Shown: positions 5,767-58,970, counted from the first letter of the stretch. The stretch: 64,000 nucleotides of DNA from Bigelowiella natans CCMP2755 (GCA_000320545.1 ADNK01003277.1:1-64000); one strand, 5' to 3'. The notes: a model not told the origin generated them from the letters alone. Made by a program: numbers and translations.

Positions 5767-6860
5767 TTTTAGCGGGCTTGCGGTAGCTGCTTAGCTTTTG
5801 TGCGCGGGACTGTGCTGATGTCACTGAGTGTCAACACGCGGTCCTGTGTGCGTTTGAATTGTGTTGATGACTTGTGACTTGCGCTGCATGCATGTGCGCA
5901 TTGGGTTCCGGCGCATTCGCGAAGATTCTCGAATCTTCCAGAATTCTCTCGAATCTTCCGGAATGTTCTCGAAGCTTCTGGAAGATTCTCGAAGCTTCTC
6001 GAAGATTCCCGAAGTTCTGAGAACTTCCATGCGCATGTGCGCAGCGCAGCGTGCAGCACGAGTGGACGTGCGCATGCTGCGACAGCTCCTTGATCGTGGG
6101 TGGCGCGGCCAGACCGCTGACATCGTTGCCTGGAAGAGAGTGGCCGTCCCGCCTGGTTGACAGGGGGGCCCAGGGAGCACCACGACGCCTGCTAGCCTGC
6201 CAGACTCAAGGAACGTCGCTCGACCACAATGATCATCACCAGATCCAGAGATCACTGGATCAAGTGAAGTTTCGAAGCCAGCATCAAACGCCACGCACGT
6301 TGCTCACACTCGCATCGTGCTCACTTTCATTTTGTGCGGGGTTCGACACGACGCACGCCAGCACGCGACGCGTCGCAACGTGCCAACCCCCTTGACAACA
6401 CCACTTGCAGTTCCAAGTGAGCTGATGCGCTTCCTGGCTGGCACAACCAGGCGAAACCTGGGTACATGGGACCTTGATCGACGATGCGACGGTTTCGCAC
6501 GCGCGTTTATTTCCTGCGCAATGAGCACTGAAGCAATGCGAAGTCTAGCGCAGCTAGCAGCATCCAAGATCGATCTAGCTCGTGCGATGTTCATCATGCG
6601 CACGCGTGCTGCACACAATCGTCGTCGTCCGAAATGCCTCATAGTCTTCTAACCTTGTCGTTGCGCAGTTTGGGTGCAACGACTGAGCGACTGCCCTGTA
6701 GTGATGCGATGATGGCGGTGCAAACATCACACTTTGCAAGTCCATTTGCATGCAGCTGCAGTCCAGCTAGCATCTGCAGCACATCTATGGTCACGGTCTA
6801 GACGGTGTAACAATGGACATGCACAACATCATTAGCAGCAACGCTGCGTTGCCTGAACAG
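5767..6860. other. Palindrome-rich island 1 (similar composition at 1-457), holding the copia element
   Basis: Dense TGCA/CATG/GCGC/CTAG, no microsatellites, lies 3' of V-ATPase G. Confidence 0.65.
5915..6028. promoter_or_regulatory. Long heat-shock-element-like array (nGAAnnTTCn)n
   Basis: GAA at exact 10-bp spacing from 5921 to 6021, with TTC 5 bp later in most units; spacer bases vary. Confidence 0.75.
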
Positions 6861-7029
6861 ATAGAGATGATTCCTCCTTTAGCGTTCTAAATTTTTCGAT
6901 TCCCCAAGAAGAGAATCTTTATTCTTGATTATTTTCCACATGGTGACCCTATCTTTACCTACCCCATCTTATCACTGGTAATTCTTGATTAGCTACCCCT
7001 GACCGTGGTACTTACGATTAAGACCGATT

Positions 7030-7726
7030 TTACGACACAGATTGAATAGCTTTCTGTTGGAAGGCTTGCACATTCTCTTTGGTTGCTTTAGGGTTCACTT
7101 TCGTCACGAAGTGAAGAATAAGGCCTAGCGAATCATTCATTTTCTCTCCAGCCTTCTTTTTTAGTTCGGCCAGCTTCTTATCCGTCTCCTCTTTCAGCTT
7201 CTGCCTCAGTGAGTCATGCCCCTCTTTGTTTTCCTACAGAATATGGTTAATTTTAGTAAATGCATCCCTTTGTGTAGCTATTGAACTTGAGCTGTTATCT
7301 CTCACCGAGGTTCCAAGAATGTCAGCTTGCAGCTGTTTTTTTATTGTTTCTAGTTCCTTATTCGCCTGCGCTTCTGCTTGCTGCTTCTGGACACGTCTCT
7401 CTGATAAGCAAGTTAATCAGACTCAATTTTTTGTGGTCTAAGACAAATTACTTTCGTATGCCTCATTGATAATATCTTGCGCCTTCTTGTCGGCAGCGCG
7501 AAGGTCGCTCAGGTACGCCCCCTACCAATTTAGGCACATCTATTAATTTGTTGACTGCGATTCTCTCTTTTTACCGATTGTTTTTTAATCGGATAAGTGT
7601 TGTCGACAAAATAGCGATCGTAATGTTCACAATGTTTATCATCCACAATCCGGAACTGGGTATTCTCTCGCTCTGCCCTCTCTTATGCCTCTCTGAGGGG
7701 GGATGGTCGCGCACCTGCTTGGACAT
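7030..7726 (-). CDS. VMA10: V-type H+-ATPase subunit G (4 exons; missed by ORF track)
   Basis: Spliced by eye: MSKQ|GAYLSDLRAADKKAQDIINEAYE|RRVQKQQAEAQANKELETIKKQLQ...|ENKEGHDSLRQKLKEETDKKLAELKKKAGEKMNDSLGLILHFVTKV...*; length and charged helical pattern match subunit G. Confidence 0.75.
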
Positions 7727-8059
7727 GCTGATTGAATTTAAGACTAAATTTCTGATATCCTCTTAGAATCATCAGTAATTTCTACTATGCGACATATTAT
7801 TTATATCCATTCAGCTACATAACATTCTCCAATTCTACATCATTCTTGCGAACCTTCCATACTAAGAACGCCAACGAGGGCTGCCAATACTCCCAAATCA
7901 GTGCCGTCTTGTCGCATTTTTCGTAACATTTTACAAAGATATATTTTTCGTCAGGTTGACATTTTTGTGCAGAATTTTACTATGTTTTATTTGAACGACA
8001 ACATATATCGACTAATATGAAATCTGGATCCATAGGACCTAAAAATCCATGATATTTTG

Positions 8060-9515
8060 ATGAAGAATTATGTTGATAATGTTGTCGTATTTGAAAACCA
8101 CCACTGCCACTGTTCTCAGTCCACGAACCGGCCGGCCAACAAGAAACCGGTTCTTAGCAACCGAAGGAGAACGTGGTGGAGTCGAAATTCAAAGACTCTT
8201 TCTTTCGTCGTTCATTCTCAAAAAGAATAATCGTTCGGGCTTGTTACTTGACCCTTCTTTATATTGATGCAAGTGGTAAGTATTGATCCTCGTGAAGTAG
8301 TAGTTTGAGCGAGCCTTCTCTTTTTTGTTTAATGCTCGAACGTCGTCTTACTGTGTTGTTACCCAGAGAAATATAAAGCCGAGAGGACGATCTCGAGCTA
8401 AAGGGAGGGAAGGAATAGAAAAGCAGCGTCTTGCGGAACGAAGGTCTACTTATTTTTTGAAATGTGAATATTTTAAATTCTCTGATTATTCATTGACTAA
8501 ATGGCTGCCTGAAAATATATCAGAACAAACCACACTCGCCATGACCCGAAAGTTATAATGAAACCGTTTTCTATTGGCGGATCTACACCTTTGTATATGC
8601 CAGGTATATTTAGCACATCCAATCTTCGTAGGCATGTCATTATTGGGGAAGTTACATACCTAATCTCCATTCTACATTCTTAGAAAATCAACGCTTCATC
8701 ACCATGGGGGCAGCTCACGAAGAGAAATCAAGGAGGGATGTACTTGTCACGAAAAAAAGAGATATTTTATCATCGAAAAGGTAAAAATAAATCAGATCAT
8801 TCTGCTCTGTGCCTACTTTTTGCTAGTCTGGGCTGTATTTCCAATTGACCTCATTTTGACCGATAATTTCAGATCGGAGAATATTAGCAGAGAACGAAGT
8901 AGATGGCAACATGAAGAGCGAAAATACGTCGCCTCGGATGCCAGAATGAAAATGTTTAGGTTTGTCTGCAATAAGTCGAACATATCCGATGTTTATTAAC
9001 CGATAGAGCGAGAGGCTGAGGAACACAGAATAATTCATTAATAACAATTCACTCTCCAGGGAAACTGGTAAAAAAGCAATGAGGAATAAATCAAGTGTCC
9101 CATTTGATCCTGTGAATCATAGGTATGAAAGATTACAAACTGATATACCAATCCAAGTTGTTTTTTACTTATGCGTCATTTTCTGTGGAAGGTTCAAAGA
9201 CGGACTAGATGCACAGAGGATGGTCCACATGGAGAACAACTTCAAATATCGGGCAGAAGTTAGGAAGGATCGGCTGTACTCAAAAGCCAATGGGTGATTA
9301 TCTTTTTCTCAGAACACAAAATCTAAAAGATAAATGCTACTTTCATTTTTCAGATTCGGGCAACACTTGCAAATATGTATTCCCTAATTTTTATTTTGGT
9401 GTGCAGGCGATTTAACCCTATCACAGGCGTCGAAAAAATAAAAAATCCTGTGAGGCAACGTCCTGTGACTCCACCAAATCTGAAGCACATACCGAAGTGG
9501 AAACGAAATTGCTAA
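8060..9515 (+). CDS. Hypothetical basic multi-exon protein (start uncertain)
   Basis: GT-AG-bounded exons, e.g. SENISRERSRWQHEERK, MRNKSSVPFDPVNHR, FKYRAEVRKDRLYSK, RFNPITGVEKIKNPVRQRPVTPPNLKHIPKWKRNC*. Confidence 0.5.
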
Positions 9516-9559
9516 ACAAAACGAAGATCAAGTTAATGTTTACCGTTGCCAATTAGTGG

Positions 9560-10200
9560 TGACATTAGTGGGTATCATTCAACCTTCTAGGTTAGTACGA
9601 TGCAGCATCATGCATAGATGTGCGTGCTGCAAGTTTCTAAGTCGCATAGCACAGAATCAAATGTTGATTTACATCTCGTACAATATGTCCCCCGGGTGCT
9701 TGGGAGCACACATAGGTTGGCAACAGAAGAATAGAAGCTGTACGTGTCATTGTGCTAGCGCGCGTGTAATAACACGTACTAGCGTGCGTTACATGCATAG
9801 AACATGCAATCGTATCGCCGTGTGTGCTTCATATCTCGTGTACGTATATACGTGGGATGGGTGCCAAGCTAGCTAGCTATAGCAAGCCCTATGTCTAGCT
9901 ATGTGTGGACACAACTACTAGACGACATGATGCGTCCGCTCCATTATTAGTCTAGCTAGCGCTGACATAGTCCATTAGTGTGTGCATTTCTATGCACACA
10001 GTGTGTACAATGTCTCATTCATTGTTTAGCTGTCATATTGCAACGATTGTGTCCATTTCACATAGCTCATTGTCATAAGCTCGGCTCTTATTGTAGCTAG
10101 CATAGCGTAACGGGCGTAGGTACGCCTAGATAGACATGTGTATGCAATTGAAATTCCAATCGAAGACGAAGGCAATTGATCTGAAAATTCCAAGTGGTTG
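9560..10200. other. Palindrome-rich island 2 at convergent junction
   Basis: e.g. gctagctagctatagc, catgcatag. Confidence 0.7.
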
Positions 10201-10259
10201 CAGTGGTGATGTTTATTTATTGCCGCATACTTATACACGACTAAATATGTGAATACGAT

Positions 10260-11436
10260 TCATTTAATTTCGTAGTTCTGTCGGCACATTGGTAGATCTG
10301 CTGCCACTGCGTGTAATTGGTCAATCTCTGCACTTGTTTTTAATGTTTGGCTATATCTGTGATCACTTTGTACTTTTTCTTTGTGTGCGCCATAGGAATC
10401 GATACACCTTTCGAGACCCGAGGACATGCTTCCACCTGATTCTTCCCCTGATGATGAGTCTTCGTCAGAATGCCTAATATTCTTTGCTGCTGGATCATGG
10501 TTTTCATCTATTGGAGAAAGAGTATTTATCCCTCCAAGCTTGCGAGAGAGATTCCGAAAATTATTGTTAGCCTCTTTGACAGTTGTTGTTATCTCATTTG
10601 ACATCTCTGGTAGGTTATTTTTGGTTGATGATTTCCCTTCTGAGTTTGAAGCTCTCTTTCTTGAAAATTCCTCTTGATTATTCAGTTCATTATATTTCTC
10701 AGTTTTCTTGCTTTGATCACCGTTGAATTCCCCTGGTTCCTCGTTTGTACCCTTCTCATTATAATGAACGTTCTCTGTTCTATCTTTCACCTCTCTAAGT
10801 GCAACATTCGAAATTTTCTCTTTCTCGGCGCTTAACGAATAACTGTCTTTACTCGGTTGATCAATCTTCTCATCCTCAGATACAACTTCCATGTTGACTG
10901 CGTGATTATGTTCTTTCGGTCTTGTATTAATCTCACCCCCCCCCCCTAACTCCACAAAATCGGACTCCATTGCTTTGTGTATCCCGGTGGTCCTGTGCGA
11001 GACTACATAGCAAGTACCCCATTACGGAAACAAAACACAACAAACATTAACGTATATATGCGTGTGTATTAATACCATAGACATAGCAAACCTTTTGTTG
11101 GAGGCTGTGAATTTATCTTATCGCTGAGAAGATCCGATTTTCCATCCTCAGAAGTAGCAGCTGCGGTGTGTGTCTGGATCGATGCAGTTTTCACACAAGA
11201 TTTATTATTCTCCACGGTTTGCGCAGAATTATTCACTACGTATTTGTTCGCCTTCGGGTGCCTAAACATTCCAACAACTTGTCTGAGATTCAACTTTTCT
11301 ACCAAAAGTAGTCGGTTTAACAAGAAAAATATCACGCTAATATCTATGTCACTCTCCCTACTCACACAGGTTTCGGACGGCCAGAGTTACTTCGGACATT
11401 ATCTCCTTCGCTCTCGGAAGAGCAGCAAACCCCCAT
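10260..11436 (-). CDS. Low-complexity hydrophilic protein with predicted N-myristoylation/palmitoylation (MGVCCS)
   Basis: Exon 1 MGVCCSSESEGDNVRSNSGRPKP from ATG 11436; downstream exons match ORFs 11069-11365 and 10260-10970. Confidence 0.6.
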
Positions 11437-15785: not shown

Positions 15786-16658
15786 TAAACAGTGAGGCCC
15801 TGCAAATATGTGCTACGAAGTCTTACCCATCTTCCTCCTCCTCCCTGTCCGATCATCACGTCTGCACTTCGGTAGTAACATTGATGGTGTTCTTCCCATT
15901 ACAATGAAAGCTGAGCAGATAAATGGAAGATAGCACATAGCCATGCACAACCTTGCTTCCACAGAATGATAACATTATTAATAATAATTGTTAGTATTAT
16001 CATCATTATCATCATTGTCATCATCATCATAATAAAACACACAATTAATCACTATCATCGAAGCTTCGACTTAAAGACGTTAATTTATAAAAGAAAACGA
16101 AGAAGGCGTGTCATCATATGAAAAGGGGAATGTATAACTATCGTTTATTGATACATTACAGACGGAGTTACAGCATAGAGGCCAGCTCATTATTGCACAG
16201 TCAATGGTAGTACTAAATGCTGCTACTACATGATGCATGTATAATAATGAGAAAGAAAAGAGAAGTTGTTGCGTTGTCGGGTTGTTGATGATGGTGATGA
16301 TGAATATTCACACTTTGCATAGTCCATTTTCATCGGCCACTAATTCTATCGAAACCTGTTATATTATCTTGTTCGGCTCTAGGGCTGGGTTGACATGAGT
16401 AACGGAAATGTATGGGTATGAACATCACAACAACAAATTACTAATTAGCCTTTGGGCAATTTAAAACATGGTAAATCAGGGGTTAAAGCCTTTATTATAG
16501 ATTTATAGGAGAATATATATTTCTCTCATGATACTACTAAATGCTTTTTCGTCACAACTTTAATAATAATACATACATACATAATCCAGGGCATTGGTGG
16601 TGCAGCGCTTCCAGACCCTTCCATTACCGCCACCGCATTATGCTGTCGTCGGACTTAA
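11550..16658 (+). CDS. LamG/concanavalin A-like domain protein with Cys-rich C-terminus (many small exons; start uncertain)
   Basis: Exons LPSLTVAMWIFL, VHIAFSLEGKLLELYVNAHKD, AAYIDRLRFYERTLDREDIAA (LamG signatures), then FGCRNCHY, EALQICA...HHVCTS, TELQHRG, GWVDMSNGN, ALCCRRT*. Confidence 0.7.
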
Positions 16659-16679
16659 TGATTATGGAAACTCTAGCTG

Positions 16680-17500
16680 CGACAAAAATGATACGATTTA
16701 CTAGTGAATTTGCAACAGTGAGACTATACTGTCCAATGAAGTGCACAAGCAGGTACATTTACAATGTGGCAAAGCCACACTACTCTAGAGATATTAAAGA
16801 TGAATGTGATCCGTTTGCCTTTTATGCCATGCCATATGCCTGATAGAGATGCCTGATCGTGTTCATAGCTAGAGTCACATCATCATCCAGCTACTGCGTA
16901 ATTACATGCTCTGCTTATTCAAGCTATGTATGCCGCAAATAATGCCCCATTATTCGAGCATTATCATGTCCCAATAGCACACGTGCAACAACGTAAATAT
17001 ATGTGCAGATGCGCTTCACAAACAGCTAGAATTTTAATGAATCCTTGATGAATCATCTTGCATGCGCTCGAGATAAGGGAGCTCCGTGTCGAGCAATGAA
17101 TGAATTGTGCTTGTATATGTGCAAAAAGATGCTACAGAGCCAAAAATATCGTCGATATCCAGATTGCACATCAAGTACACGCACTTAAGCACTAGCTAGA
17201 GCAGCAACACACGAACACACGCACATCACGCGAGTTTCTCACAGCACATCATTGCGCAACGTCCAAACGCAAAAAAATCCGCGCAAAGTTTCTGTATAGT
17301 TGTTGCAGCTTATTCATCGCACTGCTCATTAGAAATATTAGTGTGTACTACTCTATTATCAGCATACATGGTGTGGCTTGTTGCTAGCTAGTGTTGTCAT
17401 CATGCATCTACGACATGACAACAATTGCAGCCGCAGCAAGAACTTCTTAAGCGAAGTCCTCTATGTCCTTACCATCACACGTGACCCCAATGACGTGTCT
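16680..17500. other. Palindrome-rich island 3 at convergent junction
   Basis: e.g. gcactagctagagc, tgcatgcgc. Confidence 0.65.
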
Positions 17501-17600
17501 ACGTACGTAGTAGGAATAATAATAATAATAATAAGAAGAAGAATAAGAACATTAGTATCTGTGTGTGATGACGTATGGGCTAAGAAAAATTTGTACCCGG

Positions 17601-17757
17601 TTACTTCGCAATGGTATAGCTGACACGTGTATTCCCTTTGTTGGTTTTTATCTTTGTAATCTTCATTGCCCCGATTTCTTCAGTGTGTGCTACATGGGTA
17701 CCTCCGCATGCACATCCAAGGACGTCCGAACCCACTTTCCTACGTAGTGGGCATGTC

Positions 17758-17793
<36 letters not shown>

Positions 17794-18037
17794 TCATCAC
17801 CAACACTAGTACTCAGTACTCAGTGCAGTGTGTGAGCGAGTGAGTGGGTTTCGTAGGAAGATATGTGCGAACAACATTAAATTTCTTACACGCGTCGAAT
17901 AGTAGAAGTGGTGCTACTGCCACCACTGCCATCTGTGTAACTCACAGCGGTCTTGATCTTACTTTCAATCAACTTATCGATTGCTAAATATTCAATGAAT
18001 TGTTAGCAACAATATCTATACATATTTACTACATATA

Positions 18038-26257: not shown

Positions 26258-26651
26258 CGTGTCTCCTAAAAGTCTGGAAACCAGTGATTACCGTCGTAAT
26301 AAGATGATGATTTCATCGATCGACACCTCATACGTTCAACGACAACAGCAGTTTTATCAAATGTTAGTGGTACAGAATAATGAGTAGTCGGCCATCTATC
26401 TTGCTGTGACAGCATCACTCAGACAACTACTAAAGCATACTAATATATAATTCCTTATTCTAAGTCTGTTGACTATGAATTTGTTGTATCACCAACATAT
26501 GTACCACATACATGTGTCTATGTGTCTACATAGTTCAGTGTAGTATAGATTCCAATTTTGCACTCCTAGATTTAGATCTCGTTTAATTCTCCCTCCTATA
26601 TTATGTTGCATGCATGCCAGACGATCATACCAACTTATTTTATCATATACT

Positions 26652-26691
<40 letters not shown>

Positions 26692-26739
26692 CGGATGTGA
26701 TGAAGAATCAAATTTATATATATATATATAGAAAGATAT

Positions 26740-27730
26740 ACACATGTATGGATACATGTTGTGTTGATGTCATGCATGCAGTCTAGCAGTCTAGCAGCAG
26801 TGGCAAACACATCATCAAATGCGATACTATGAGTAGCTGCATGATTGTTGATAGTTGCAGAAACACATGGCATGTGTTTTTTAACATCATCATTGGCCAG
26901 CTGCATGACACGGCTAGACGGCGCGTGCGATCGCTGCATTGCTATAGCTAGCTAGCTCTATTGCTAGATTGCTGTTCGTTAGTCTAGAGCTACTTCAATC
27001 GCAACGGTGATTTTTAGTGTTTCCCTGCATGCGCATGCATGCTAGCATGCAAGGCGGCGGAAGACACAAAGTTCAAAGAACATTAACCAGACTAGCTAGC
27101 TAGTAGTGTGAGAACCTCTAGACCTATAGCTAGCTGTCTAGCTGTGCTACGCAACTCATTATTCAACCCTGTGTCTACTAGTCTAGCTAGCTAGCTCTTC
27201 TAATTCGTAGAGCTATTTGATGATTGCAACAACTAGATAGCGCTGCAGCAGCATGCACGTACGTACGTACAGCACCGCAGTGCATCGTCACATTGCATGC
27301 TACTAGGCTAGCATGTTTGCCAAAATGAATTCCAGTCATTGCTAGCTAGCTAGATCGATTGGCCACCACAGACCAACCTAGCTAGCTAGCAACGCACAGT
27401 CTAGCAGTGCTAGAGTTGCATCTAACCTAGCAATGCAATGCCTAGAATTGTGCGCATTTACACACATGTCTAGCATCTAGCATGTGCCTCTCAATTGCCA
27501 GTGCTGGCCCGCACGCATGCTAGTGTGTGTGCATAATAAGATGTGCTGCAGCCGACGACACAGCTACGGCGCACAAACTGTGATTCCTTGCTAGCTAGCT
27601 AGGTCTAGAGGTGCGCGACAGCACCGCATAGCATGTTGCGACTCGCCACACTTTAGTACCAACATATAGATCATGCTAGTCTTAGCATGCTTCGCTGACA
27701 ACGGTGGCAGGGGACATCAATCTGTGTAGA
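26740..27730. other. Palindrome-rich island 4 at convergent junction
   Basis: Many gctagctagc, gcatgcgcatgcatgctagcatgc, acgtacgtacgtac. Confidence 0.8.
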
Positions 27731-27785
27731 CTACTAATACTGTACCATAATGTTGATCATTTCATTATATCATTTCATTGTACAG

Positions 27786-28886: not shown

Positions 28887-28930
<44 letters not shown>

Positions 28931-36098: not shown

Positions 36099-36549
36099 TG
36101 ATGCCATTGCCAACTATCAACCTTTTGCTGATATAGCTTAAATAGTCGGAAAAATGTTGGCTAGCACTAATTCGAAAGAATCGATTCATTTAGAGGAAGA
36201 AGAAACTAATTTCTCATCAGCATCTTCATAGACAATGGCATGATTGAGACTAACAACAAATTACCCACATGTTACACAAACAACACCTTTACTTATTTTA
36301 CCTTAGAGAAAGACAATGAGGAGATGATTAACTCGGTCGTAATAGATAGCTTGCTGTCGAAGCTGGATGCGCTGTAGGTAATAACATCAACAGTATAGCT
36401 AGCATTACATCCATGTAGTATTATAATGCAAAAAAGACGAGTGTAACTCTTTATGAAAAATACTATTGATCGAACGCGGCTTGATGCCATTACAAGTGAG
36501 CATGAATTCATTTACCATGGTTATTTGTACGCTATCATGGTTAATCAAT

Positions 36550-37110
36550 GAAATCTATCGTTTAGCGTGCACTAGAGTACTTGCGCCTTGCGACGTTCGC
36601 CCATTCTAGCTAAGCATTGCGACATCGATTTGAATGCATGCAGATCGAGAGACAAGTCTGCATGTTTTTGGGCGGCAATAAATCCTAAACAGCGTTAATT
36701 CATCGATCAATTAAAGCTAAATGTGCTAAAGCTGCCCCTTATTAGACATCTAATAATGAACCATTTCTGCACATAAGGCACCGCTAGCTAGCTAGACCGC
36801 TCTCTATATGCAAGCGCCTTCGATACGACGTACTAGCGTAACCCGAGCATGCATGTGGCGTACCGTTCTAGCGTTTACATGCTGCATGCTCTAGTGCTAG
36901 CTTTCGAATCGCTTGTTCCCGAAGTGTGCTAGTCATTGCACTATACGTACAGCTAACAGAGCTTGAGACAGCAGCACTAATATAGAGAATATGGAGTTCT
37001 CTAGTTCTAGAGTTATCAACGTAGGTTTTGTTCATCTAAGAGGATGTGTGACTCACACTCGCATCTACTTGCACATGGTCGAATGCAACATACCATACTA
37101 GCATATCTAG
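36550..37110. other. Palindrome-rich island 5 at convergent junction
   Basis: e.g. gctagctagctag, gcatgcatgtg. Confidence 0.7.
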
Positions 37111-37127
37111 ATATATATACAGCATAG

Positions 37128-37167
<40 letters not shown>

Positions 37168-37518
37168 TACAACCCTCAGCAATCACATGTATTATCATGA
37201 ACTTTGTATCTAGAGCTTCAGAGTGTTAACCACTACTGAAATGACAAAACCACATACACACACATACACATACACATACACATACACACGTAGCTACATC
37301 ATCATCTTCGCATACACACACGTTTAAACGATGATCGAAGACGCTTACGTAGTACTATTACTAATACTACTTCGCTGCTGCTCAGGGACTGTTGTTTTAT
37401 GTGCTAGAGGTCGTCTACTACTACTGCTGCTGCTACTGTTTAGGGGCTGTTCTGTGGGCTGGAGGTCTCCCCCTTTTTGGTTTACTTGTAGCTTCCTGGT
37501 GATTCATATCAGGTAATA

Positions 37519-37557
<39 letters not shown>

Positions 37558-37669
37558 GAGAAACATGCATGATAGATAATAATGAGAGATACGCAAAAAA
37601 CAAAAAGAAATACTTACAAAGTAAGATTTTCCTCTCTATAAGCAGCAGGACTGTTGTAATAGTAGTAGT

Positions 37670-45547: not shown

Positions 45548-45759
45548 GAAGAAATACCATTCCCGGATGCGCGGTGCAATAGCGTAGAGGATATTTACTT
45601 TCGTCGATGCAGTATTTGCCTAGTAACATAACAATCCGTAGGCGTTGCGGAGGTCATGACGTATATCCGCCACATTTTTCGCAAATTATGCATTATAGAA
45701 GTCAAATAATTGTTCGGCGTCATAACACTTAGTTGTTGTATTTGTTAATATGTACGTGA

Positions 45760-47030
45760 TCTCTAGCTTACTCGTGTACAAATTCGCACAACGAATCGTT
45801 GCATGACGAACGTACAACATGCTATTCACATGCCATGGATGATGACACATGTAGTGTACGTGGGTTCACGTTCCCGGGCTCAACCTACTCTAGCAACCTC
45901 GTACAACTTGCGGAGCTTCTCAGAAAATAGTGTGGACTTGCAAGTCCCTATGCGTTGTGTCGTGGCTTGTTTGGTGCATGTGTGCTTTTCAAGTGCATGT
46001 GGTGTGCATGGGTACATGTGTTCTCCTACGATACGCGTACAAGCATGTGGACTCATGAGTCCCTACATCATCAACGCGTGTTTGTCGCCTTGCAAATGCC
46101 AGAGCGAGTGACAAACTGTTGAACAACTGAACAGATCTAGACGTCTGCGCTGAACATGATGTGGCCGCCATCGGCTAACAACAAAGTCACAGGGCGGGAA
46201 GTTGGGAGGTGCATCCCATCTTGTGTGACAACATGCTGCAACCCGGCTCTAACTATTGCCACTAGACTGCATCTGCGCGGTAGTGTCTCATTTTTGCGCC
46301 GGATTGCCAATCTGTCTAGATCTCATCTAGCAATGTTCATCAATATCTGATGCGTGCATGCAGCTGTTTCTATGAAGGCACATGCATGCCACGATGCGGA
46401 TGAATTCATAGATCGCCAGATCTGAAAGACAAAAGGTCAGCAGTGTGCTGTGGCTACATGCCGACTGTGACAACTAGGGCGCAGTTGTGCTGCAACAAGA
46501 AGCACCAGAGCTCAGTCAACGCATGCTGTCTGTGACACAAATGCAGGTCTAGCTAGAGCTAGCAGAGAGATGGGCATGTGGCGCACGCCAGCATGGCGCC
46601 ACAATTGCAGTTTTCTGCCAAGCAGAGACAAATCGATTCAATGTGAGCGCTGTATAGCAGCACAGCCGCTGTTTTGTGCGCAGCTGCATTGGGATAACAA
46701 TTGAACAAAATTGAATTGTTCATTGCATCCGTCTCACATGACAAATCTAGAATTCACTGACACAAATGCATGCGTCTAGCGCTGGCAACGAACAATGAAC
46801 ACAAACACCGAATACAATGGTTACCACGCAGCACAACCATTTTGTTCGGATGTATAGATGAATCGAATGGTTGCCAACGAGTAGTTTTTGTCATTCTGTT
46901 ATTCATTCGAATGGTTTCGAACATAGCCATTGACATGGTGTGTGACAACCACAACTACTCAGCACTAGCAGGCAGGTTCATGCAGTTGCTTCGGTTGCGG
47001 CGATAGGACATAGATGACATCGACGCTGTG
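45760..47030. other. Palindrome-rich island 6 at convergent junction
   Basis: e.g. gtgcatgcagc, tctagctagagctagc. Confidence 0.7.
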
Positions 47031-47131
47031 CCTGCGAACCTTACGTTGGACTCAAATGATCGAAATAATCCAAGCGTGATACATGCATACAACGAATGTG
47101 AGGGCGTCGCCCGTTGTTGTTTTTCCGATGA

Positions 47132-48432
47132 TCATTGTGGGTTTATATCCTCTGACGGAAATTCCAATTCAGAGTCATCTACAAACGGCTTGGGAGTTGG
47201 AATTCCTGCAAAATTTAATTAGGATGAAAAAAAAAAATGATGGCAAGCTTGTGTCATTACCTAATTTCTTCAGAAGCTCATAGGCCTTTAAATCATTTTT
47301 GTGACCGCGCTGAAACAGATGCAACAATAATTGAGTTGGTTGCATTGTCACAGTAATATTCATTTTATTTAACAAAGCAGTCTATGAAGATAGAAGCTAC
47401 TGTGTCAGCACCGAATGTGAGAGAAATGGATGTGCTTTTGAATGCCGTTGGGGTTTTAGGTTTCAAACTTATTCTTATTTTGAAATTATTCCGGAACAAT
47501 TGGTTTATCCCACAAGTATGTAATCTCCCTTATTCCATCCAACAAGGAGAGACAAATATCATAGTAAATTTCATCTCTCTCGACTTTTTTGGTTGTAGTA
47601 CGATAATGTTACTACATGCAACAGCTTCTCCTATTCTAAACTACCTCATCTAATGTCTTGAGATTATCTAGAGCCGCCTTGATGTTGTTAAATTGACTAC
47701 CAGATTCATCACCTTCATCACGACGTTCGATTTCTGCTTAGTAATAGGTATAATAAATATCTAATTATTATGATGTTCTTGTGTATACATATAAATATGT
47801 ATTAACTTTTCCCTATGTACATATGATTTTTGACCGAGAATAGCTTCATCGTCTTCTGGACTCAAAGTATTTCCTTCATCGTTTTCTAAACATCGTACGG
47901 AATAAGGAAATCGATTTTTGATTATCGATAATGAAATATATAAATGTGAAGAATCAACTACCTTGCTTGACTTTCCGTTGGTACGTTTTTGCAGCTTTGA
48001 TTCTCTCTAAAGCACTAGTGGAGGGTAGATTAAGGAGTGAAATATAATCTGGAATACAAGTGGTAGTAGCTACGAAGGGTTACTACAAAACTTAAGTTTG
48101 CGAAATATCCGCCTATGAAATTCAAGGAGAAATGAGAACCACCTTTGGGAATTTGGTGTGGTGTCCATTCCGCTGCCAATACCTGAACGTAATATCATAA
48201 CAATCGAATGTACAGCAGGGTACACTACTTGTTTGCGGGGGTGCGGCAGATTAGCCTTAACTAAAAATAAAGCTCAATTATGGGCTAATTGTAATCACAT
48301 TGGGCGATTGTGATGCAACGGCCATGATCTACTGATGAAAGCTAATGCCTTTATTTACGATGCTGTACATTCGATTGGACACATGCACTCATGCTACTAC
48401 CACTATAAGTACTGCTACTACATCTACTACCA

Positions 48433-49489: not shown

Positions 49490-52232
49490 GAATATGTGTG
49501 TAGCACGAAGTACAAAGCCAGTAGTGGGTGAGATTTTCGAGCTACTGGACCCAAACAAATCTGGCTTCTTGGAACCGGGGGTTATTTTTCACATATTATT
49601 ATGATCAAGAACAAAATAATACTCGTATCAAAATTGATTATAGCTTCTACTATTGTTCTCCCTCACATTAATTTACAAAAGCACTACTCCTCATCACAAG
49701 TAGTACCTCAACTCTTCAGGAATATACCCAGTTGGTGCACTTCATCCACCAGGACAAAGTGATATTACATCTAAGCTGCTGCTACGATTTATATAATCAT
49801 TTTATAAAATCATTCTTGGTCCATTGTTAATATGCACAGGCTCTGGAGTCGATAAAGTTTCCTGAACTGAAACAGATAGATATCGATGGAGATGAGAAAG
49901 TAGTACTCGAGTTTCCTAAACTGAAACAGATAGATATCGATGGAGATGAGAAAGTAGTAGTACTCGAGTGATCATTTTGAAATCAGTGTCGTAAGTCCTG
50001 TGGCAATTCAAAACTGATCTGGTTGCAAGATTCACGAACAAGTTCGAAGCTTCTTATAACCTTAATTGCTTGGCTAATTACTTCACAAAGGTTTCTTTGG
50101 AAGAGCTTTCTCAATTCTTCGCTAAAATAAAGGTCATGTACCATGGTACGGGCATTTTGGTTTTTGGCTGAGTAACTGACTGATTATCTGACTGATTGGT
50201 TGACTGATTGACTGACTGACTGACTGGCATGCCCTGTTGTTGAAATTTCCCCCACCTAGATAGCGGAGCAGCAGTTGCTTTTAATGAAGGTGATGAGGGC
50301 TACAGTTAGGATTAGGGTTAGGATTGGTGCAATAAAGAGGGTAAAGTTATTATAAGAAGAAAAGGCCATCTTCTTCTTCACAATAAGCATTGGAGTGAGT
50401 GAGTTGCTGCTGCTGGAAACATCAATTACGAATATTTTGTTCCTGTTGTGATTGTAGTTTTTGGTCCCATCATTATCGAAGCCATCCTTACTACACTTAA
50501 ATTGTTTGATTGTAACACCAATTACATACAATTTACCAAATTTTTACTTTGAACTTTTGTGTGTGTTTCTTCCATTGTGACTCCATCCACTACCACTGCT
50601 AACATATCGTAACATTTCATATTAGGAAGCCATCGTGAATGTGCTGGATGCTCCTTATGCAAATGAGTAAGTAGTAGGAAATATGGAATCATCATCATCG
50701 TCATCATCATCATCATTATCATCACATGGTTTCTTTCATGACCTTCCCTTACTTACTGGTAAATAGATAATAGTACACTAATCAAAACCCTTCTTCCTCC
50801 TTTGAACAGACCGAACCAATATGATAGCGGGGATGGTGAAGAAGAAGAAGACAGTGATGCTGATTTTAAGGCTCCTCACGAATATAGTATGACTATGCTT
50901 TACACCGTCGCCTTACAACATACAAATGTTTGTTGTACCACTACTACTCATCCGTTGTTTAAATTTGTACATTGCCATAGTTTTCCTTTTGTTTCTATCC
51001 CTTTTAAGCAATAATAACTCAATGGCAATAAGATCTTCTAATCTATTGCACTATTCCTCCTCCTCCTCCTCCTCCCCCTCCTCCTCCTCATTATATTTTA
51101 GTCCGTATGTCCCCATCCCGTCTTTCAAATGCTTCTTTATTTACAGCTCAAGCGAAGGTATTATTATTTGGTCAATTAGTCAGTTGTTCACCATCATCAC
51201 CATCATCATCATCCTCTTCTCACGAATCACAACAGCACATGCACCATAATTGTAACTACAGATAAAAACCTATAAATTTAGCGCAAGTTATTGATACAAA
51301 CCTATAACCTATAAGTAACTCGTCCCCTTCCATATCAGCTAATAATTCCTATTATACTTGATATAGATTCATTTAAATTATGAGCAAAAGATATATGATG
51401 ATGACCGAAGAGAAAAAATGTTGGCACTGAATAATGTTTGTGTCTTAATGCAACTCGCAAAGGAGGGTGATGATTATGATGGTCATACTGAAGATGGTGA
51501 TGAGAAATCAACCAATCTGGGAAAAGCAGCAGCAGCAGCAAAAAGAACAATCCCAAAGCAGAAAAGGAAGGAACATCATATAAGAAGTACAAAGGTAGTC
51601 TATCAAAGATAATAATTGCTACCACTTACACAATTTGCAGAGAAACAGCATTTACTCACTGCAGATAGTTTTTAGTAATGGTGTGAATAATAATCAATCA
51701 TCTTAGCGGTTTCTGTTGTTTTCTTCGCTTTATTTATCATGTGCGAGTAATTGTAAGAATGTAGTACCTATTATTGCAGTTGTCATATTCATTTTATGAT
51801 TATTATTATTATAATTATTATTATTTGACACACTACTACATATATAATACACAAGACCTTCATCACTTTTCTACACATTTAGGAGAAAAAGACAACAACT
51901 GGAAGCGACAGCAAAGACGATAGAGAAGGCTTTGTATGGCATGCTCAGGTTACTTACTTCCATGATGACGTAAAAATCTATATTTTGACTGTTGTGAGTA
52001 CTCTTATGGTGTATGGTATTACCATATCGTCACAATCGTCATCATCAAAAAAAGTAATGCCGTCTACTACTGCTGCTGCTGCTACTATCACTCCTCTTTT
52101 TCTTCTTCTTACAGATTCTTCAAGACAACTACAAAAATTCCAAACACTGTTTCCCATCTGGTCAACTTAAATTAAGACGACAAAGGCCACAGGTAGTACT
52201 ACTTTTTGCTACAGCAATGATAGAAGAAAGAT

Positions 52233-52270: not shown

Positions 52271-53200
52271 TAAAATTACTATGGTGAAGAAGGGTCAATA
52301 TGCTCGAATGAAAGAAGAAGAATCCTTACTAACTAACTGGCAAACAAGATTATTCATAATGAAAAGGAGGGGGGGTTGTGAATGAACACTAACTCCGTAG
52401 CAGTAACGTTATTAATTCAATGATTTTAGATAAAAGGGACGGATTTCTTTGCAAAATTAATGAGTGTTAAAGACCAAAAGAATGATAAAGAAGGAGGGGA
52501 ATATTGGATCTTCAAGTCTCTTGACGGAGGCTTAAATGGGTGATGAAGCAGCATGCCATGCTATTACAGGATAACAATGATAAACATTAGCCCTAACCCT
52601 AACCCTAATCCTTGAATATATTATGGAGGGAGGAAGGTTTTTGTTTTACTTACACAATTCCATCATCACTTTCTGTTTATGTGACTTTGCTAGACAGCAA
52701 GAAGCATGAACAATGGCATTAGTTCTGAATAGATCATCATTACGTTTTAATATTAAAACAAAAGAAATTATAATAATAACAATCATATACCCATGTGTGC
52801 ATGTGCTACTACGATTGTATCTTTTTTTGAGGGGCAGGATGTATTCCACACACCACACGCACATACACACACGCACGCACATACACACACGCACGCACGC
52901 ACGCACAGATGGGGAGGTCTCAATTACTTACAGCTGCGTTCCATTACCTACAAAGAAAAGTGAGGGTGCTAGTAAGAGAGTGTGGGATGAGCAGCAGCAA
53001 GAGTAGCATATGTGAAATGGGAGGCAAGGCGCAAGGGAAAAAAAGATTTTTCAAATCAATAGTTTAGGCAATTCATATAATGCAAAGCGAAGAAAATGAT
53101 GAATTCAATTACAATCAGCAGAAAGAAGATGATATATTTTTGTTTAATTTCTAACAATTACTACTTAAGTCACATACAATATCTACCCTCAAATTTGCTC

Positions 53201-53247
<47 letters not shown>

Positions 53248-53780
53248 ATGGGGCTATGTGGTTTTCTCTGTTCTTTAGGGGAATGCTTGGTAATCGCATC
53301 ATCCGTGCATGGGACAGGTGATGATGCATGCAAAAAACCTCCCATTGTTTAAGAGTATTAATATATTATTCTTTGAAGTAGAAATAGTAGTAGTAATAGT
53401 AGTTGTTGTTGGTAGTAATGCATGTTCCTGTGTGTGAGTGGCGTATACTTACCTTTTATAATAGTGATTGTGATATGATTGGTCAATCCCATCAATGTAG
53501 TTCCAATTATGCTGTAAAGAGGCGTTCTAGTCCTGCAAGAAGGTAATGCTTCCTGCTTCCATTTAATATATCTCATCTTGAGAAATAAATCAAAAGAATA
53601 AAATATTTTATCAAATAAAAAATACAAAGGGTTAGTTAAAAAGTAAAATATTTTATCAAATAAAAAATACAATGGATTAAAATGACAAAAAAATTAACGA
53701 GCAACCTGCCTTACTACCGACCTGTTAGAAAATGTGGAGGATGATAAAAATTTCAAAAAAGTTCTAAAACAATTACAATG

Positions 53781-53822
<42 letters not shown>

Positions 53823-55314
53823 AAATTCGTTGCTCTATTGTCAAGGAGCATATGATTTGATTTTTCTTGGATTTTACGATGTAGGAAAAATAAAGGAAAG
53901 GCAAAAGTCATCCAGGTACTTGTTTGATCTCCTGTGTCTGTATACGCAGCAGATAAAAAGTAACAAACAAAGATGCGTGGCGAAAACTTTAAAAAATATT
54001 CAAGTTATATTAGTGTCTGATAATGTTATAGTCACCTTCGTCAATATCGATCAAGGATAATATAATCGTTCCTCCCTCACTTGCTCACATATGATTAGAT
54101 GAAAATGAGGTGTGGAGGGTTATGACCCACAACCTACTAATATCAGTTATAATAAAAAAGTTTCCCGTTGAAATCTTACCTTGATAGTAGAAATAAATTA
54201 TAACTCGTATCAGTCACAACCACATCCTCCAACGCCAGAATTTCCAGTAGAAGCTGCAAAAAATGGTGATGCGTGAAGAATAAGTATGATATTACCACAA
54301 GAAGAAACGAACAGCCAATTTTGATGGTTAATGTTGTTGTATTCTATTGCATAGTCAATTAGTAGTCCGCGCTCTTCGTCATCAAATTATGTAATACATA
54401 GTGTTGTGGTATGGAATATTTAAAGTGATTATCCACAACTGCTCCATTTCCTCATTTTTATCCTCCTCTTCCTTCTTTAGGACTTTCTGTGAGAGCAACA
54501 TTAGTATCGCCATCGTGGTAATAGTAGTTGAAAGTGTGCATCTTTTTCATCGAAAGAGCAAACACACTTTATCTTCTACAATGCACAACACACGCACGCA
54601 CGCACACACACACACACACACACAGTAATGATATGTTAATGATAGGAGCAAAAAGGGTTGGACCCAAGATTCTCCCGGTCACTTTTGGTGGTAATGATTG
54701 CTTTTTTTGCACTAAAGATGATGAATAATATATATTTTGCGTACATTTTTTAATACAATAAGTTTTTTTGTAAGTTATTACAGCTACTACTATTTGATAT
54801 GATATCATAACAATTATCATCAGTATCATTATCACCACCACCATTCAATAGAATTTTTCGACATGAAGGTATTTTGCCTGTCGTGAGGCTTCGAAAAGGA
54901 GAGTAGGGTGAGAAATGGCAGTGAAATAAATTCATTACTTAAAATGAGAGAATAATATCTTATGGAGCGTTGAGGCAATAATTCCATATTACTATTCTTA
55001 CATTAGCATTATCTTTTGATGAGGAATATATGAAAGGCATTAATTAAATATGAGAACTAATGTTTTTTATCAAATGGCAATCCTTCTATGTCAACCAGTG
55101 ATTTTAATTGATTGAATAGCAACCTGTCTATGTTATTAAAAAGCATTGGAACAAAGATGATTCGAAATCTCCGAAAGTATGCCATTGTTGCGTGCAAATA
55201 GAAATTGAAAATATAAAGTTTAAGAATAAATAGACGGCAGATATGCCATTACTGCTTGCAGCACATTATTCTTATCCATGTGAAGAGTAATATTCCCCCC
55301 TCCTCCCTTCGCTG

Positions 55315-55400
<86 letters not shown>

Positions 55401-55854
55401 AAATGTATGCATCTGTCATCGTAGTCAACCGTACAAGGTTTTATTCCAACATCTATGTTCCTTAGTAGAATTAAAAATATCCTTATACCACCTGTCCTAC
55501 TATACAATACCTCCCGATGTGCTACTCCTGCTGCATTATACACACAGCTATTTGATTCGGGAGCATGAAAGTGAGCCTATTGCCGTCCGAATTCACCATT
55601 TTGCTCACAGGTCAATAACGATGATAATAATAATAATAATATATGATAAAAATACGACGGAATCGGTTGTTTGAAACTAGAAAATGAAATTAATATTGGG
55701 AGGAGGGAAAGGGGGAGAGAACGAGAGGGATATAAGAAGAAGTTTGCTAAATAAGCATACATTCTGGTTCCAGTATATCAAGCACGAACTCTATTTTTTC
55801 TTAATTTTAGCTTTCCAATTAATCTCCACTGCGGCTCTGTGACCATTTCCGTTT

Positions 55855-55939
<85 letters not shown>

Positions 55940-58012
55940 AGGTTTTTATTGCTGGTTTGTATGTGTGTGTGTGTGTGTGTGTGAAATTGCATCGTGTACT
56001 GCATGATTTAGGTATTCTTATAAACGAGCGGAAACTATCAAGGATCAACTAGTATGTGATACAATGATTGTATTATGATACTGAAATGATGATACTGAAG
56101 TATAATTCAAAAGAAGGTGTAGAAGGGAAAAAAAAGAAAAACAAAAAAATGAGAGGAATCGAGGAGAGAAGATTACTATTCTTATATGATGCTGAAATAA
56201 ATACATATACTTCTGCTTACGGGTGTTACCTTTTAGGTATACCATGCAGGAGTGCTGGTTGAGTGGGATCATCGACAGTGAGATGATTATAATTTGTAGA
56301 TAATTGATACAAGAAGGATAAAAAGAGTCAGAGTTGGGGAACATACACCACATAGATGCTACATTATTGCCATTATTATGCCAATCTTACTAATGACGTC
56401 TTTACGGCATAATAGTTCTATTTTGTAACAAATTTTTAACATAATAGATATTGTACGGTTTTTGAATTGGGCTTTCTCAATGGAGTCTCCGGATATGGAG
56501 GAAAGTCAGTTGTATCAGTAGTATTGCTGCAAATAGTAGCAGTAGTGGTGTAATGCATTAGTATTTTTTTCTACGGCCCTCGTATCTTCTATCAGCATTA
56601 ATAATAAACAACAATAAAATACACGTATTGCACACATGAAACCTCATACACTAATACATATGGGCACATAAAGTATGATATCTCAATCATAAAGTAAGTA
56701 GTGCATGACTATTTGCACCATCACTGTTAATAGGTCGAATTGGGTGGTAGATAAAAATGCCAAACCACCTGGGCTGTACCGGGCGATGCCAGGATGTAAG
56801 GATTCCTGGGATTTAATGAAAGAACTATAGTAGCAGTTGCATAAAATTATTCTTTTCCTATTAATGTAAGCATTTTGTAGAAGTGAAGGAAGAGAAGAGG
56901 AAATTAAAGAGTATTAGACAGAAGAAGAATCAAGACTGACGGACGTTGTATCCGACTCATATTTACTACTGATATTGTGAGTCTACTTGATCAAATTTTT
57001 GTGTACTACTCTGCTCTATATATCTTGGTTTCAATGTTGCAAAAATAGGCATGAAAACACCTTGGTTAACTGACAGGTAACTGAGGTTCATGGTTCTAGC
57101 AGCAGTACATATGTTTTCCTTCTAATAAAAAATGGATATAAATAGTGCTACACTATTTCAAAATTAGTCTTAGTCGTTATCATTGGCAGGGCGGAAGTCA
57201 GAGCTGTAGATCTACCAGTGAAGTCCAAAGAAGAGTTCGAAAACTATCTTAGAAAGGTATGCACATTACAGGACGAGAAAGAAGGGGAAATAAATGAACA
57301 TACCAATACAAACGCATATGCATATGCACATCTCTAAATTATCTGCTAAATCATTTTCCCCCCAGTATTCTGGTCGTGGTCTTCGTTTTATTGATCCGCA
57401 GGTGGGTATCATAAGCTGGCTTAGAATGCCAAAGTACGCATCCTTGAGAAATTAGCTTTTGCTTTCAACATAAATTCAGATATCCGAATCCGCGAAGGTA
57501 CGCTTGACTCATAGGAAGCAATCGGACATAATGCGATATATTCTCAACTATATACTTTGCGACGGCAAGGTGATTTGATAGTATAATTTAAACGATCAAA
57601 TGTTATTAAAAACGGTAGCTCCTGCTAAAAGATAGTATAACAGTTTTTCGTATTTCCAATCATATTGGCATCTTTCTCTCCCTCCATCTCTCTCTTTTCC
57701 TATTTCCTCTCAAACATACATGTGCATGTGGCTTGTAGATGATTCTTGCATAATTTGCAAAAATATACTTATTAATTGTCACAATATCTTCAGTATGATG
57801 AGAACTTCAGAAACTGCCAAGTAAGTACTGTCATTAGAGAAATTATGACATATTAAATTACCTAATTAATGTTGAATTAACAGGATTTTGCTGCTGATTT
57901 TTTCGGATTTCTCGCTGGACTTCCTCCTGATAAATGCAAGCCATTCCACGCACTGTGCCGATTGACTTACAAGCACAAGAAATATAATTTTCTATATGAT
58001 CCAGATATTTGA
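49490..58012 (+). CDS. Uncharacterised protein: EF-hand pair plus C-terminal permuted papain-like (PPPDE/LRAT-type) domain; may be two genes
   Basis: IFELLDPNKSGFLEPG|E and IDIDGDEK|VSLEELSQFF EF loops; later VYHAGVLVEWDH, YCTVFELGFLNGVSGYGGK|SNW, YDENFRNCQ|DFAADFFGFL...FLYDPDI*. Confidence 0.65.
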
Positions 58013-58179
58013 GTTCAATAAACACGTAGCATCCCATGGCATTGTCATACTTAAATTGCGGCTGCTGCATTTTATTTGCCGATGATGGATTTCAACCAAA
58101 TATTCTTGTCTGTCATATACACAGGACTAACTTCTCTCGCATTCGCATGAATGTCCAGCACTGTAGGCAAAATAACAGT

Positions 58180-58970
58180 GTGAAATTATGTCGAACAAGT
58201 GCGCTAACAACAATGTAGGTACGTCACGCCTTGCCAAATAACCTAGGTTAGGATCATCTGCGCATGCATGATAACCACGACGGGCGTCCTGCTAACGTAG
58301 CGCAACTAGCCCAGCTACAGCATGTGCATCGCGCGCTCGATGACATGCGAGAGCGGAGACCTTTGTATCCGGCTAGCGAAGACTGCTACTAAATCACACT
58401 AGCACATGACTAATAGCTGTTGCACACGCATAGCGCATGCAACGTGCAAGGACTGAACCTCATTAGCTTCCATGAAAATGTGATTCGATGGCGCATCGCA
58501 GCAGTGCCAGCTCTTAGCGTCATGTTGCGCATGCATGAGTTTGACGTCATGTTGCCAGAGCAGCGAGCGCGGTCAGGCCGTGCTTCGCGGCACGCAGCGA
58601 AACATCTGAGATGAGATCGCATGCTAACGTTCTAGCGTTGTGCTACAGCTGCTGCAATTATATATGTAGTGCACATGCATTTGCACAATGAACATGCGAG
58701 CAACAGCTCCAGGCTGGCGACCTACCTTGGCAAAGACTATTGCCAGCAGCAAGTGTACAATGGTGCACTCATGATCTAGCAGAATGTGTGAGAGCCCAAC
58801 AGTTGCATGCAATGCCTTGTGCCTTGTAATCATAGTCACACCTTAACAAATAAGCGCGTACGTTGCATTAGTAAGTGAGCACCGCATCGTATGCCAATGT
58901 AGACAGATAGATGTGAAGGCAACTCAGTTTTCACAACTCCGCACCATTGTTTATGATGGCATGTCATGTG
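58180..58970. other. Palindrome-rich island 7 at convergent junction
   Basis: e.g. tgcgcatgcatg, gtgcacatgcat. Confidence 0.7.

Follow-up and report, generated by a model that had tools for sequence, protein, structure and literature searches.

Why should the spacers in which two genes end facing each other be written in a vocabulary of their own? This question is raised by a stretch of 64,000 nucleotides from the alga Bigelowiella natans CCMP2755 (GCA_000320545.1, ADNK01003277.1, contig positions 1-64000; hereafter the window), in which seven segments, the islands, are packed with six palindromic tetramers (TGCA, CATG, CTAG, AGCT, ACGT and GCGC). The islands lie at 5767-6860 (A), 9560-10200 (B), 16680-17500 (C), 26740-27730 (D), 36550-37110 (E), 45760-47030 (F) and 58180-58970 (G). 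An earlier note on this DNA had proposed that they mark a chromatin or DNA-modification domain that terminates or insulates colliding transcription, or the mutational scar of such a mark. It was found that the islands of convergent spacers are a distinct palindrome-rich sequence class in B. natans and that two mutational processes are demonstrable in them, namely the insertion of CTAG together with a 4-bp duplication (CTAG+4) and the editing of TpA to CpA or TpG. The reading preferred here, to which we assign a probability of roughly 0.6, is that the islands are promoter-free spacers between convergent 3′ ends, whose vocabulary is mainly a mutational deposit of these scars and edits and not a code.

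Sequence class and gene context of the islands

The six tetramers were counted in 500-bp windows, and genome-wide searches were made in the 91.4-Mb assembly. The median count was 9 tetramers per 500-bp window, and all 500-bp windows with at least 24 lay inside the listed islands or at positions 1-750, which bears out the earlier description of these segments as packed with palindromes. The islands amount to 11% of the bases of the window, and their density exceeded that of the rest of the window 8.2-fold for CTAG, 7.5-fold for GCGC, 4.1-fold for CATG, 3.6-fold for AGCT, 3.2-fold for TGCA and 2.2-fold for ACGT. Expressed as observed over expected (o/e), their dinucleotides are characterized by GpC at 1.61, CpA and TpG at 1.49 (CpA+TpG ranging from 1.4 to 1.7), GG and CC at about 0.5, AA and TT at about 0.8, and CpG at 0.9 against 0.72 elsewhere. 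Additionally, the proportion of alternating purine-pyrimidine steps is 0.59 in islands against 0.49 elsewhere, and A/T runs and homopurine tracts are depleted. This dinucleotide make-up accounts for much of the palindrome excess, the island coverage by palindromes of at least 6 nt being 1.1-1.8 times that of dinucleotide-matched simulations. As had been noted before, no alignable sequence is shared among the islands. At E<=0.001, islands B, C, D, E and G matched only themselves in the genome and the part of island A beyond position 6122 (6123-6860) had no other genomic match, while no Rfam family was matched by the islands.

The gene ends were re-derived from Pfam anchors, RNA joints and the reading of exons. 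Pfam was run on 70 open reading frames (ORFs) of the window and provided 7 gene anchors, the other gene ends being read by eye, and exons were searched singly, with no joined or spliced protein model. Attempts to assign gene strands by self-trained codon scoring or by a 4-mer strand classifier proved too noisy. The spacers delimited in this way are listed below, with their density of the six tetramers and, where given, their number of perfect CTAG+4 scars.

6123-6860, unstranded: unique part of island A, 3′ of the V-ATPase G gene (minus strand); strongly TpA-depleted, with edited scars
9515-10259, unstranded: convergent spacer B (island 9560-10200), between the stop codon of G3 (plus, 9512-9514) and that of G4 (minus, 10260-10262); 58 tetramers per kb, GpC o/e 1.52, 11 CTAG
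16658-17601, unstranded: convergent spacer C (island 16680-17500), between G5 (plus) and the tRNA_SAD-domain gene G6 (minus); 50 tetramers per kb, GpC o/e 1.67
26388-27785, unstranded: convergent spacer D (island 26740-27730), between a DEAD-box helicase gene (plus) and an APE2-like EEP+GRF gene (minus); the richest island, 83 tetramers per kb, 40 CTAG, 15 perfect scars
36099-37669, unstranded: convergent spacer E (island 36550-37110), between G9 (plus) and the PNPase gene (minus); 47 tetramers per kb, 18 CTAG, 8 perfect scars
45548-47132, unstranded: convergent spacer F (island 45760-47030), between G11 (plus) and G12 (minus), exons and stops read; 55 tetramers per kb, TpA-poor, 0 perfect scars
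58012-59126, unstranded: convergent spacer G (island 58180-58970), between G13b (plus) and G14 (minus), G13b exons and stop read; 58 tetramers per kb, GpC o/e 1.79
52544-56734, unstranded: probable tandem (plus, plus) spacer between G13a and G13b, its boundary taken from exon reading only; 13 tetramers per kb, GpC o/e 1.07, no scar, no island

The six stop-to-stop convergent spacers held 47-83 tetramers per kb at a GpC o/e of 1.4-1.9, against 3-32 per kb and 0.8-1.2 in the six divergent spacers. The two classes were completely separated by tetramer density (Mann-Whitney P=0.002), islands being present in six of six convergent and in none of six divergent spacers. The earlier claim that six islands lie between the stop codons of convergent genes and the seventh 3′ of V-ATPase G, with none in a divergent spacer, therefore holds within the window with the stops re-derived. 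Stop codons were located 22-560 bp from the island edges and, since several are only 22-60 bp away, 3′ untranslated regions probably run into some islands. On both sides of spacer D the strands were set by RNA joints (GT..AG on the plus strand for the helicase, CT..AC on the minus strand for the GRF gene), and in two low-depth runs no RNA contigs were seen on 26600-27965. Over island D, the DNA runs X1 and X14 revealed no difference from the window, and DNA runs of one organism contained 0.89-0.94 of the words of the window.

The CTAG+4 scar and TpA editing

The arrangement X4-CTAG-X4, in which CTAG stands between two copies of the same tetranucleotide, was found 30 times in the window, where about one occurrence is expected, and 29 of the 30 lie in islands (P about 3e-27). 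The flank length is exactly 4 nt, flanks of 3 nt occurring 7 times against 4 expected and flanks of 5 nt once against 0.35, and a scan of the window for other scar types (flanks of 3-5 nt, cores of 2-6 nt) found none enriched except re-parsings of the CTAG scar. Within the duplicated target, only 2 of 46 ends have G as the first or C as the last base (P=4e-4), and the target rule is M-N-N-K, from which GCTAGC and TCTAGA follow. The scar is thus a stereotyped 8-bp insertion, made up of CTAG and a duplication of the 4-bp target. Genome-wide, there were 244 matches of CGTT-CTAG-CGTT, whereas its reversed control had 20 and the word with a broken duplication 4; for CACA-CTAG-CACA the count was 375 against 20. 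Introns and divergent spacers, which are equally non-coding, hold only 1 of the 30 scars, and therefore the insertion process is targeted and not merely tolerated. The sole perfect scar outside the islands, GGCT-CTAG-GGCT at 16375-16386, is situated about 280 bp upstream of the G5 stop, probably in the last intron. Scars referred to here by their words are the following.

26779-26790, unstranded: intact scar CAGT-CTAG-CAGT, a word that recurs at 27397
36864-36875 and 58628-58639, unstranded: scar CGTT-CTAG-CGTT, counted genome-wide
58395-58406, unstranded: scar CACA-CTAG-CACA, the second word counted genome-wide

Scars begin as CTAG and are recognised by their duplicated flanks, and since their start sequence is known, variants of the core record the changes that island DNA has undergone since insertion. 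The core variants were counted genome-wide for the CGTT and CACA families and compared with control words (in brackets).

CTAG: CGTT 244 (control 20); CACA 375 (20)
CCAG: CGTT 67 (control 5); CACA 108 (6)
CTGG: CGTT 54 (control 10); CACA 121 (11)
TTAG: CGTT 8 (control 16)
CTAA: CGTT 2 (control 17); CACA 77 (173)
CCGG, the double edit: CGTT 2 (control 10)
CAAG, a transversion: CGTT 7 (control 7)

Taken together, CCAG and CTGG cores number 121 in the CGTT family and 229 in the CACA family, about a third of the recognisable scars in both, and the other core changes (ordinary transitions, one transversion and the double edit) were at or below control. It was shown in this way that island DNA, and hence host spacer DNA, is or has been a target of TpA to CpA/TpG editing. 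The CTAG core is therefore not shielded from this editing, which stops at one hit per TpA and does not go on to CpG.

The same editing has already been reported for B. natans. In mutation-accumulation lines, a silent giant-virus insert and a virophage insert were found to have a mutation rate about 1000-fold that of the remaining genome, all their changes being from TpA to TpG or CpA; that study covered two viral regions and 124 clusters of at least 3 kb, and neither CTAG and palindromes nor convergent spacers are mentioned in it (Mettrop et al., bioRxiv 10.64898/2026.01.13.699255). The island scars share with this hypermutation both the organism and the substitution, which is restricted to TpA to TpG/CpA, whereas the islands are host DNA of 0.6-1.3 kb, mostly retain their TpA and displayed no burst in the mutation-accumulation lines. 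When the window cut-offs of Mettrop et al. were applied (rho TpA <=0.43 with rho CpA+TpG >=1.52), the segment 6123-6860 fell within both (0.39 and 1.53), island 45760-47030 came close to them (rho TpA 0.57, or 0.42 without CTAG; rho CpA+TpG 1.68) and the islands other than A and F lay outside, at rho TpA 0.85-1.18. Strong TpA loss is therefore confined to islands A and F, and these two TpA-poorest islands are those whose scars are edited or gone, island A retaining one intact scar (6188) and three with edited cores at 6241 (CCAG), 6251 (CTGG) and 6354 (CCAG).

Two further observations touch on these processes. At 26650-26735, exactly at the left edge of island D, lies a long microsatellite of (TA)n and (AT)n in unedited form, which suggests that the editing has a sharp boundary there. 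In Table S2 of the mutation-accumulation study (bioRxiv 10.64898/2026.01.13.699255), 7 of 13 de novo insertions end in ACA, three of them, including both 11-nt insertions, in AACA, and one multinucleotide change reads TGGC to AACA; the insertions ending in ACA or AACA look like a second stereotyped insertion process, undiscussed by Mettrop et al.

Explanations of the island vocabulary

According to the preferred reading, repeated enzymatic cuts with a 4-nt offset between the two strands have left CTAG with a 4-bp duplication, almost exclusively in convergent spacers and throughout the genome, and a subsequent TpA to CpA/TpG change has altered about a third of the recognisable scars of the two families, ordinary transitions leaving no trace. 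The most likely origin of the scar is the excision of a cut-and-paste element with CT...AG ends, which would leave 2-nt overhangs, like Tc1/mariner elements. In the footprints of cut-and-paste elements such as Tc1/mariner, the duplicated target is accompanied by 2-3 nucleotides of either element end, and the scar likewise has a duplication of fixed length around a constant self-complementary remnant and a symmetric target preference (M-N-N-K). However, it differs in that its duplication is 4 bp of nearly any sequence instead of TA and in that its density is extreme and concentrated in one spacer class; to our knowledge, no element with ends matching the scar is known. CTAG, AGCT and GCTAGC would then come from scars and their small arrays, and TGCA and CATG largely from edited TA-rich tracts, while both processes may reach the convergent spacers as silent chromatin that lacks a promoter or a single transcribed strand. 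Since there is no sequence common to the islands, and insertions by the dozen, edits, short repeats and a retrotransposon are all tolerated in them, they are read as a deposit and not as a code. It has to be considered unlikely, although it would extend this reading, that convergent spacers are constitutive genome-defence targets, in which silent chromatin, due to overlapping transcripts or to the lack of a promoter, recruits the TpA editor plus a CT...AG element or nuclease, so that the cell keeps rewriting its own termination zones; if true, the islands would record a gene-orientation-dependent mutagenesis of host DNA.

Several observations weigh against the deposit reading. Perfect scars make up about one third of the CTAG in islands and contribute nothing to the excess of CATG, TGCA or GCGC; their removal lowers island CTAG from 15 to 10 per kb (1.9 elsewhere) and leaves the other three words unchanged. 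A forward model of scars and editing on the non-genic DNA of the window correlated with the island spectrum at r about 0.6, and the models do not reproduce the GpC o/e of 1.65 or the GG/CC deficit; scars and editing account for part of the island composition only, these two features being outside both. TpA is undepleted in most islands, six of eight having an o/e of 0.58-0.95 when CTAG is left out of the count. Variant insertions instead of edits could in principle also have given rise to the CCAG and CTGG cores. A scan of the window for CT...AG inverted-repeat elements with a 4-bp duplication returned 12 low-complexity matches against 5 expected, none of them credible. No CTAG+4 insertion occurs among the 21 de novo indels of 3,132 mutation-accumulation generations, and about 10 of the 71 non-viral point mutations of these lines fell on TpA, most of them near virophage-like ORFs and with coordinates not mapped onto the islands; the islands are therefore not visibly hypermutating today, which makes the two processes slow, episodic or past events there. 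Moreover, the silent chromatin of the islands is putative, several stop codons being 22-60 bp from an island, and that tandem 3′ ends lack islands is uncertain, as it is read from a single uncertain junction.

Other explanations attribute the islands to a mark, to breakage or to function. In a chromatin or modified-base domain, a constitutive mark would aid termination or insulation and the sequence would be its by-product; the mark could be a modified base, or trimethylation of histone H3 at lysines 9 and 27 (H3K9me3/H3K27me3) seeded by overlapping convergent transcripts. This explanation is possible, if rather unlikely, and it is compatible with the deposit reading, for which it would supply the reason for targeting; indeed, such a domain may be the most natural reason for the confinement of both mutational processes to convergent spacers, although introns are equally free to change. 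It also agrees with the integration of copia into an island and with the fact that TpA editing otherwise strikes a transcriptionally silent viral insert, and the one heterochromatin state of B. natans, marked by H3K9me3+H3K27me3, covers transposons and repressed genes (bioRxiv 10.1101/2025.03.17.643675). However, the CpG o/e of 0.9 in islands, against 0.72, argues against heavy decay of 5-methylcytosine, and a six-frame search of the genome for the Tet/JBP domain PF12851 found no match at E<=0.001, a weak negative because the search went exon by exon and control genomes were also without matches. Heterochromatin at convergent genes and the loading of cohesin there are known from fission yeast. 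In that system, overlapping transcripts give double-stranded RNA and thereby silent chromatin, a route that could set convergent apart from tandem spacers, whereas it has no sequence signature in fission yeast. The analogy with base J of kinetoplastids, which had been drawn in the earlier note, stands as regards position (six of six convergent, none of six divergent spacers), since the islands likewise mark the convergence of transcription units, and extends to nothing beyond position. Base J, which JBP1/2 produce by modifying thymine, is invisible as a sequence class, whereas the feature of the islands is the sequence itself, and B. natans genes are monocistronic in a genome in which no Tet/JBP domain was found. 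Breakage is the basis of a further explanation, in which the scar results when host double-strand breaks staggered by 4 nt are wrongly repaired, topoisomerase II (Top2), acting at convergent torsional stress or replication forks, being a candidate. The cuts of Top2 have a 4-nt 5′ stagger, and their joining after fill-in leads to 2-4-bp duplications in yeast top2 mutants and in TOP2A-mutant tumours. The exact 4-nt duplication, the restriction of scars to convergent spacers, where Top2 is expected, and the lack of a donor element in the window fit this origin. Nevertheless, the short direct duplications of yeast top2 mutants and of the tumour signature ID17 have no inserted constant tetramer, whereas in the scar a constant CTAG, not expected of fill-in joining, stands between the copies, and tandem 4-bp duplications with nothing inserted show only a weak excess, 53 where 35 are expected, most of them being small AGCT and ATGC arrays; misrepair is accordingly considered improbable.

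The islands could also be functional two-way termination or buffer zones, in which self-complementary words act as polyadenylation or pause signals on both strands, or in which nucleosomes positioned on flexible DNA free of A/T runs obstruct both polymerase and cryptic antisense promoters. The presence of an island at every convergent junction of the window, the start of several islands about 20-60 bp from a stop codon, the depletion of A/T runs and homopurine tracts and the share of composition left over by the mutation models would all be in agreement with such a role, for which there is a precedent in the yeast bidirectional termination zones centred on palindromic UAUAUA (bioRxiv 10.1101/2022.11.02.514956). 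Like these zones, the islands lie between convergent genes of a compact genome and carry self-complementary words readable on both strands, whereas the yeast zones are about 120 bp long, AT-rich and nucleosome-free and have a positioned motif, and the islands are about 1 kb long, GC-enriched and without one. Being 5-10 times wider than known termination zones, unique in sequence with no shared positioned motif, and tolerant of edits and of dozens of random 8-bp insertions, as well as of short dispersed repeats and a retrotransposon, the islands make a functional zone quite doubtful. Their folding excess is also inconsistent, as island D exceeds the dinucleotide expectation (z -4.8, driven by CTAG arrays) and island G does not (z -0.6); a hairpin terminator was rejected because an excess was present in one of the two islands folded. 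Judged by sequence features, a coded terminator or a base-J-like mark thus appears unsupported. The alternative inference of the earlier note, a mutational scar, was right in kind, given the CTAG+4 scars and the TpA editing, whereas the sequence-coded terminator or insulator lacks support from alignable sequence, Rfam or consistent folding. The possibility that the islands arose from ordinary AT-rich spacer by TpA to CpA/TpG hypermutation alone is highly improbable and largely refuted as the sole cause. Although the high CpA+TpG, the TGCA and CATG expected of edited TATA and the edited scars are in line with it, simulated editing alone on the non-coding DNA of the window reached r 0.35-0.46 with the island spectrum, most islands keep TpA, and editing does not make CTAG, GpC or CpG-containing words, double edits to CpG being at background. 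That the islands descend, in decayed form, from a single family of repeats or transposons, which the earlier note had named as a finding that would speak against its proposal, is scarcely credible: island A is partly a copia long terminal repeat (LTR) and island F contains two short dispersed repeats, but B, C, D, E and G, five of the seven listed, have no second copy in the genome, which refutes common descent for these five; the rest of A has no genomic match at E<=0.001 either, and no homology exists between islands.

These results reveal a eukaryotic genome whose local mutation processes depend on gene orientation, one spacer class collecting a stereotyped insertion and a rare A/T-to-G/C editing that adjacent introns do not. 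Owing to their known start sequence, the scars serve as an internal clock and extend the editing of viral DNA to ordinary host spacers; together with the M-N-N-K rule, this clock offers a handle for finding both enzymes. The islands additionally flag gene 3′ ends and convergent pairs where the annotation of the alga is imperfect. The literature searched contained no description of the islands or of the CTAG+4 scar, and what is new here is the use of scars as an editing clock, the M-N-N-K rule and the partial account of composition by scars and editing.

Mobile elements and neighbouring genes

The remaining features of the window that bear on single islands or on their flanking genes are the following.

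1-370, unstranded: island fragment at the contig start; 81 tetramers per kb, GpC o/e 1.87, 8 CTAG
1140-5507, minus: copia polyprotein ORF of 1455 amino acids, intact (Pfam RVT_2, rve, gag, Pol_BBD)
5764-6122, minus: copia 5′ LTR; at least 40 genomic copies at 86-92% identity, paired matches about 6.5 kb apart being LTR pairs
next to island A, which lies 3′ of it, minus: last exon of V-ATPase G (Pfam anchor)
17604-17819, minus: tRNA_SAD domain of G6 (Pfam)
flanking spacer D, plus: DEAD-box exons of the helicase (Pfam)
flanking spacer E, minus: S1 and RNase_PH exons of PNPase (Pfam)
45956-46068, unstranded: dispersed repeat in island F; at least 30 copies, about 80-87% identity
46618-46740, unstranded: second dispersed repeat in island F; at least 12 copies, 73-89% identity

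Island A had been described as running from 5767 to 6860; its part 6123-6860 is a unique island, whereas its first 356 bp belong to the copia LTR. As island sequence is present on both sides of copia (1-370 and 6123-6860), the element sits within a spacer, and the fragment 1-370 is probably the other half of the spacer split by it. Scars were found near the contig start at 332, 346 and 397, the last just past the fragment. The LTR itself has a TpA o/e of 0.17, no CTAG and the island-like words GCATGC and TGCGCA. Heat-shock-element arrays are located at 5915-6028, within this LTR, and at 455-500. Searches for contigs and proteins matching the copia ORF found no B. natans records. Despite the intact ORF, no matching 3′ LTR was found, the best alignment (5764-6122 with 371-750) having 69% identity over 171 nt and covering the heat-shock arrays only; the use of the two LTRs as a natural mutation record was rejected, since they could not be aligned. 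Regarding island F, the view of the islands as non-repeat DNA, which is valid for five of them, does not apply, given its two short dispersed repeats. The 14-nt palindromes GGACT-TGCA-AGTCC and GGACT-CATG-AGTCC (45934-46062), starting at 45934 and 46049, bracket a unit of about 130 bp, the second falling within the repeat 45956-46068, and this unit may be a miniature mobile element.

With respect to the genes, the GRF gene next to spacer D proved to be a single APE2-like gene on the minus strand, running from about 32 kb to 27.8 kb (27786-32000) and combining exons of an exonuclease III-type EEP nuclease with a C-terminal GRF zinc finger. A metagenome search for loci related to its last exon found nothing, and its microsatellite-filled intron at 31083-31772 reads as a false ORF of 213 amino acids. 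A sense-biased heptamer and its complement, each 270-300 nt from GCTAGC, had 765 and 845 genomic matches, most of them inside islands and hence uninformative on orientation. Across the window, gene orientation alternates almost perfectly, with convergent and divergent junctions taking turns over about 14 of them. Only V-ATPase G, with copia after it, and the possible tandem pair of G13a and G13b break this order, whereas random orientation would make half of the junctions tandem. Finally, interstitial telomere-like repeats flank G13a, with three copies of CCCTAA at 52591-52608 and TTAGGGTTAGG at 50312-50322.

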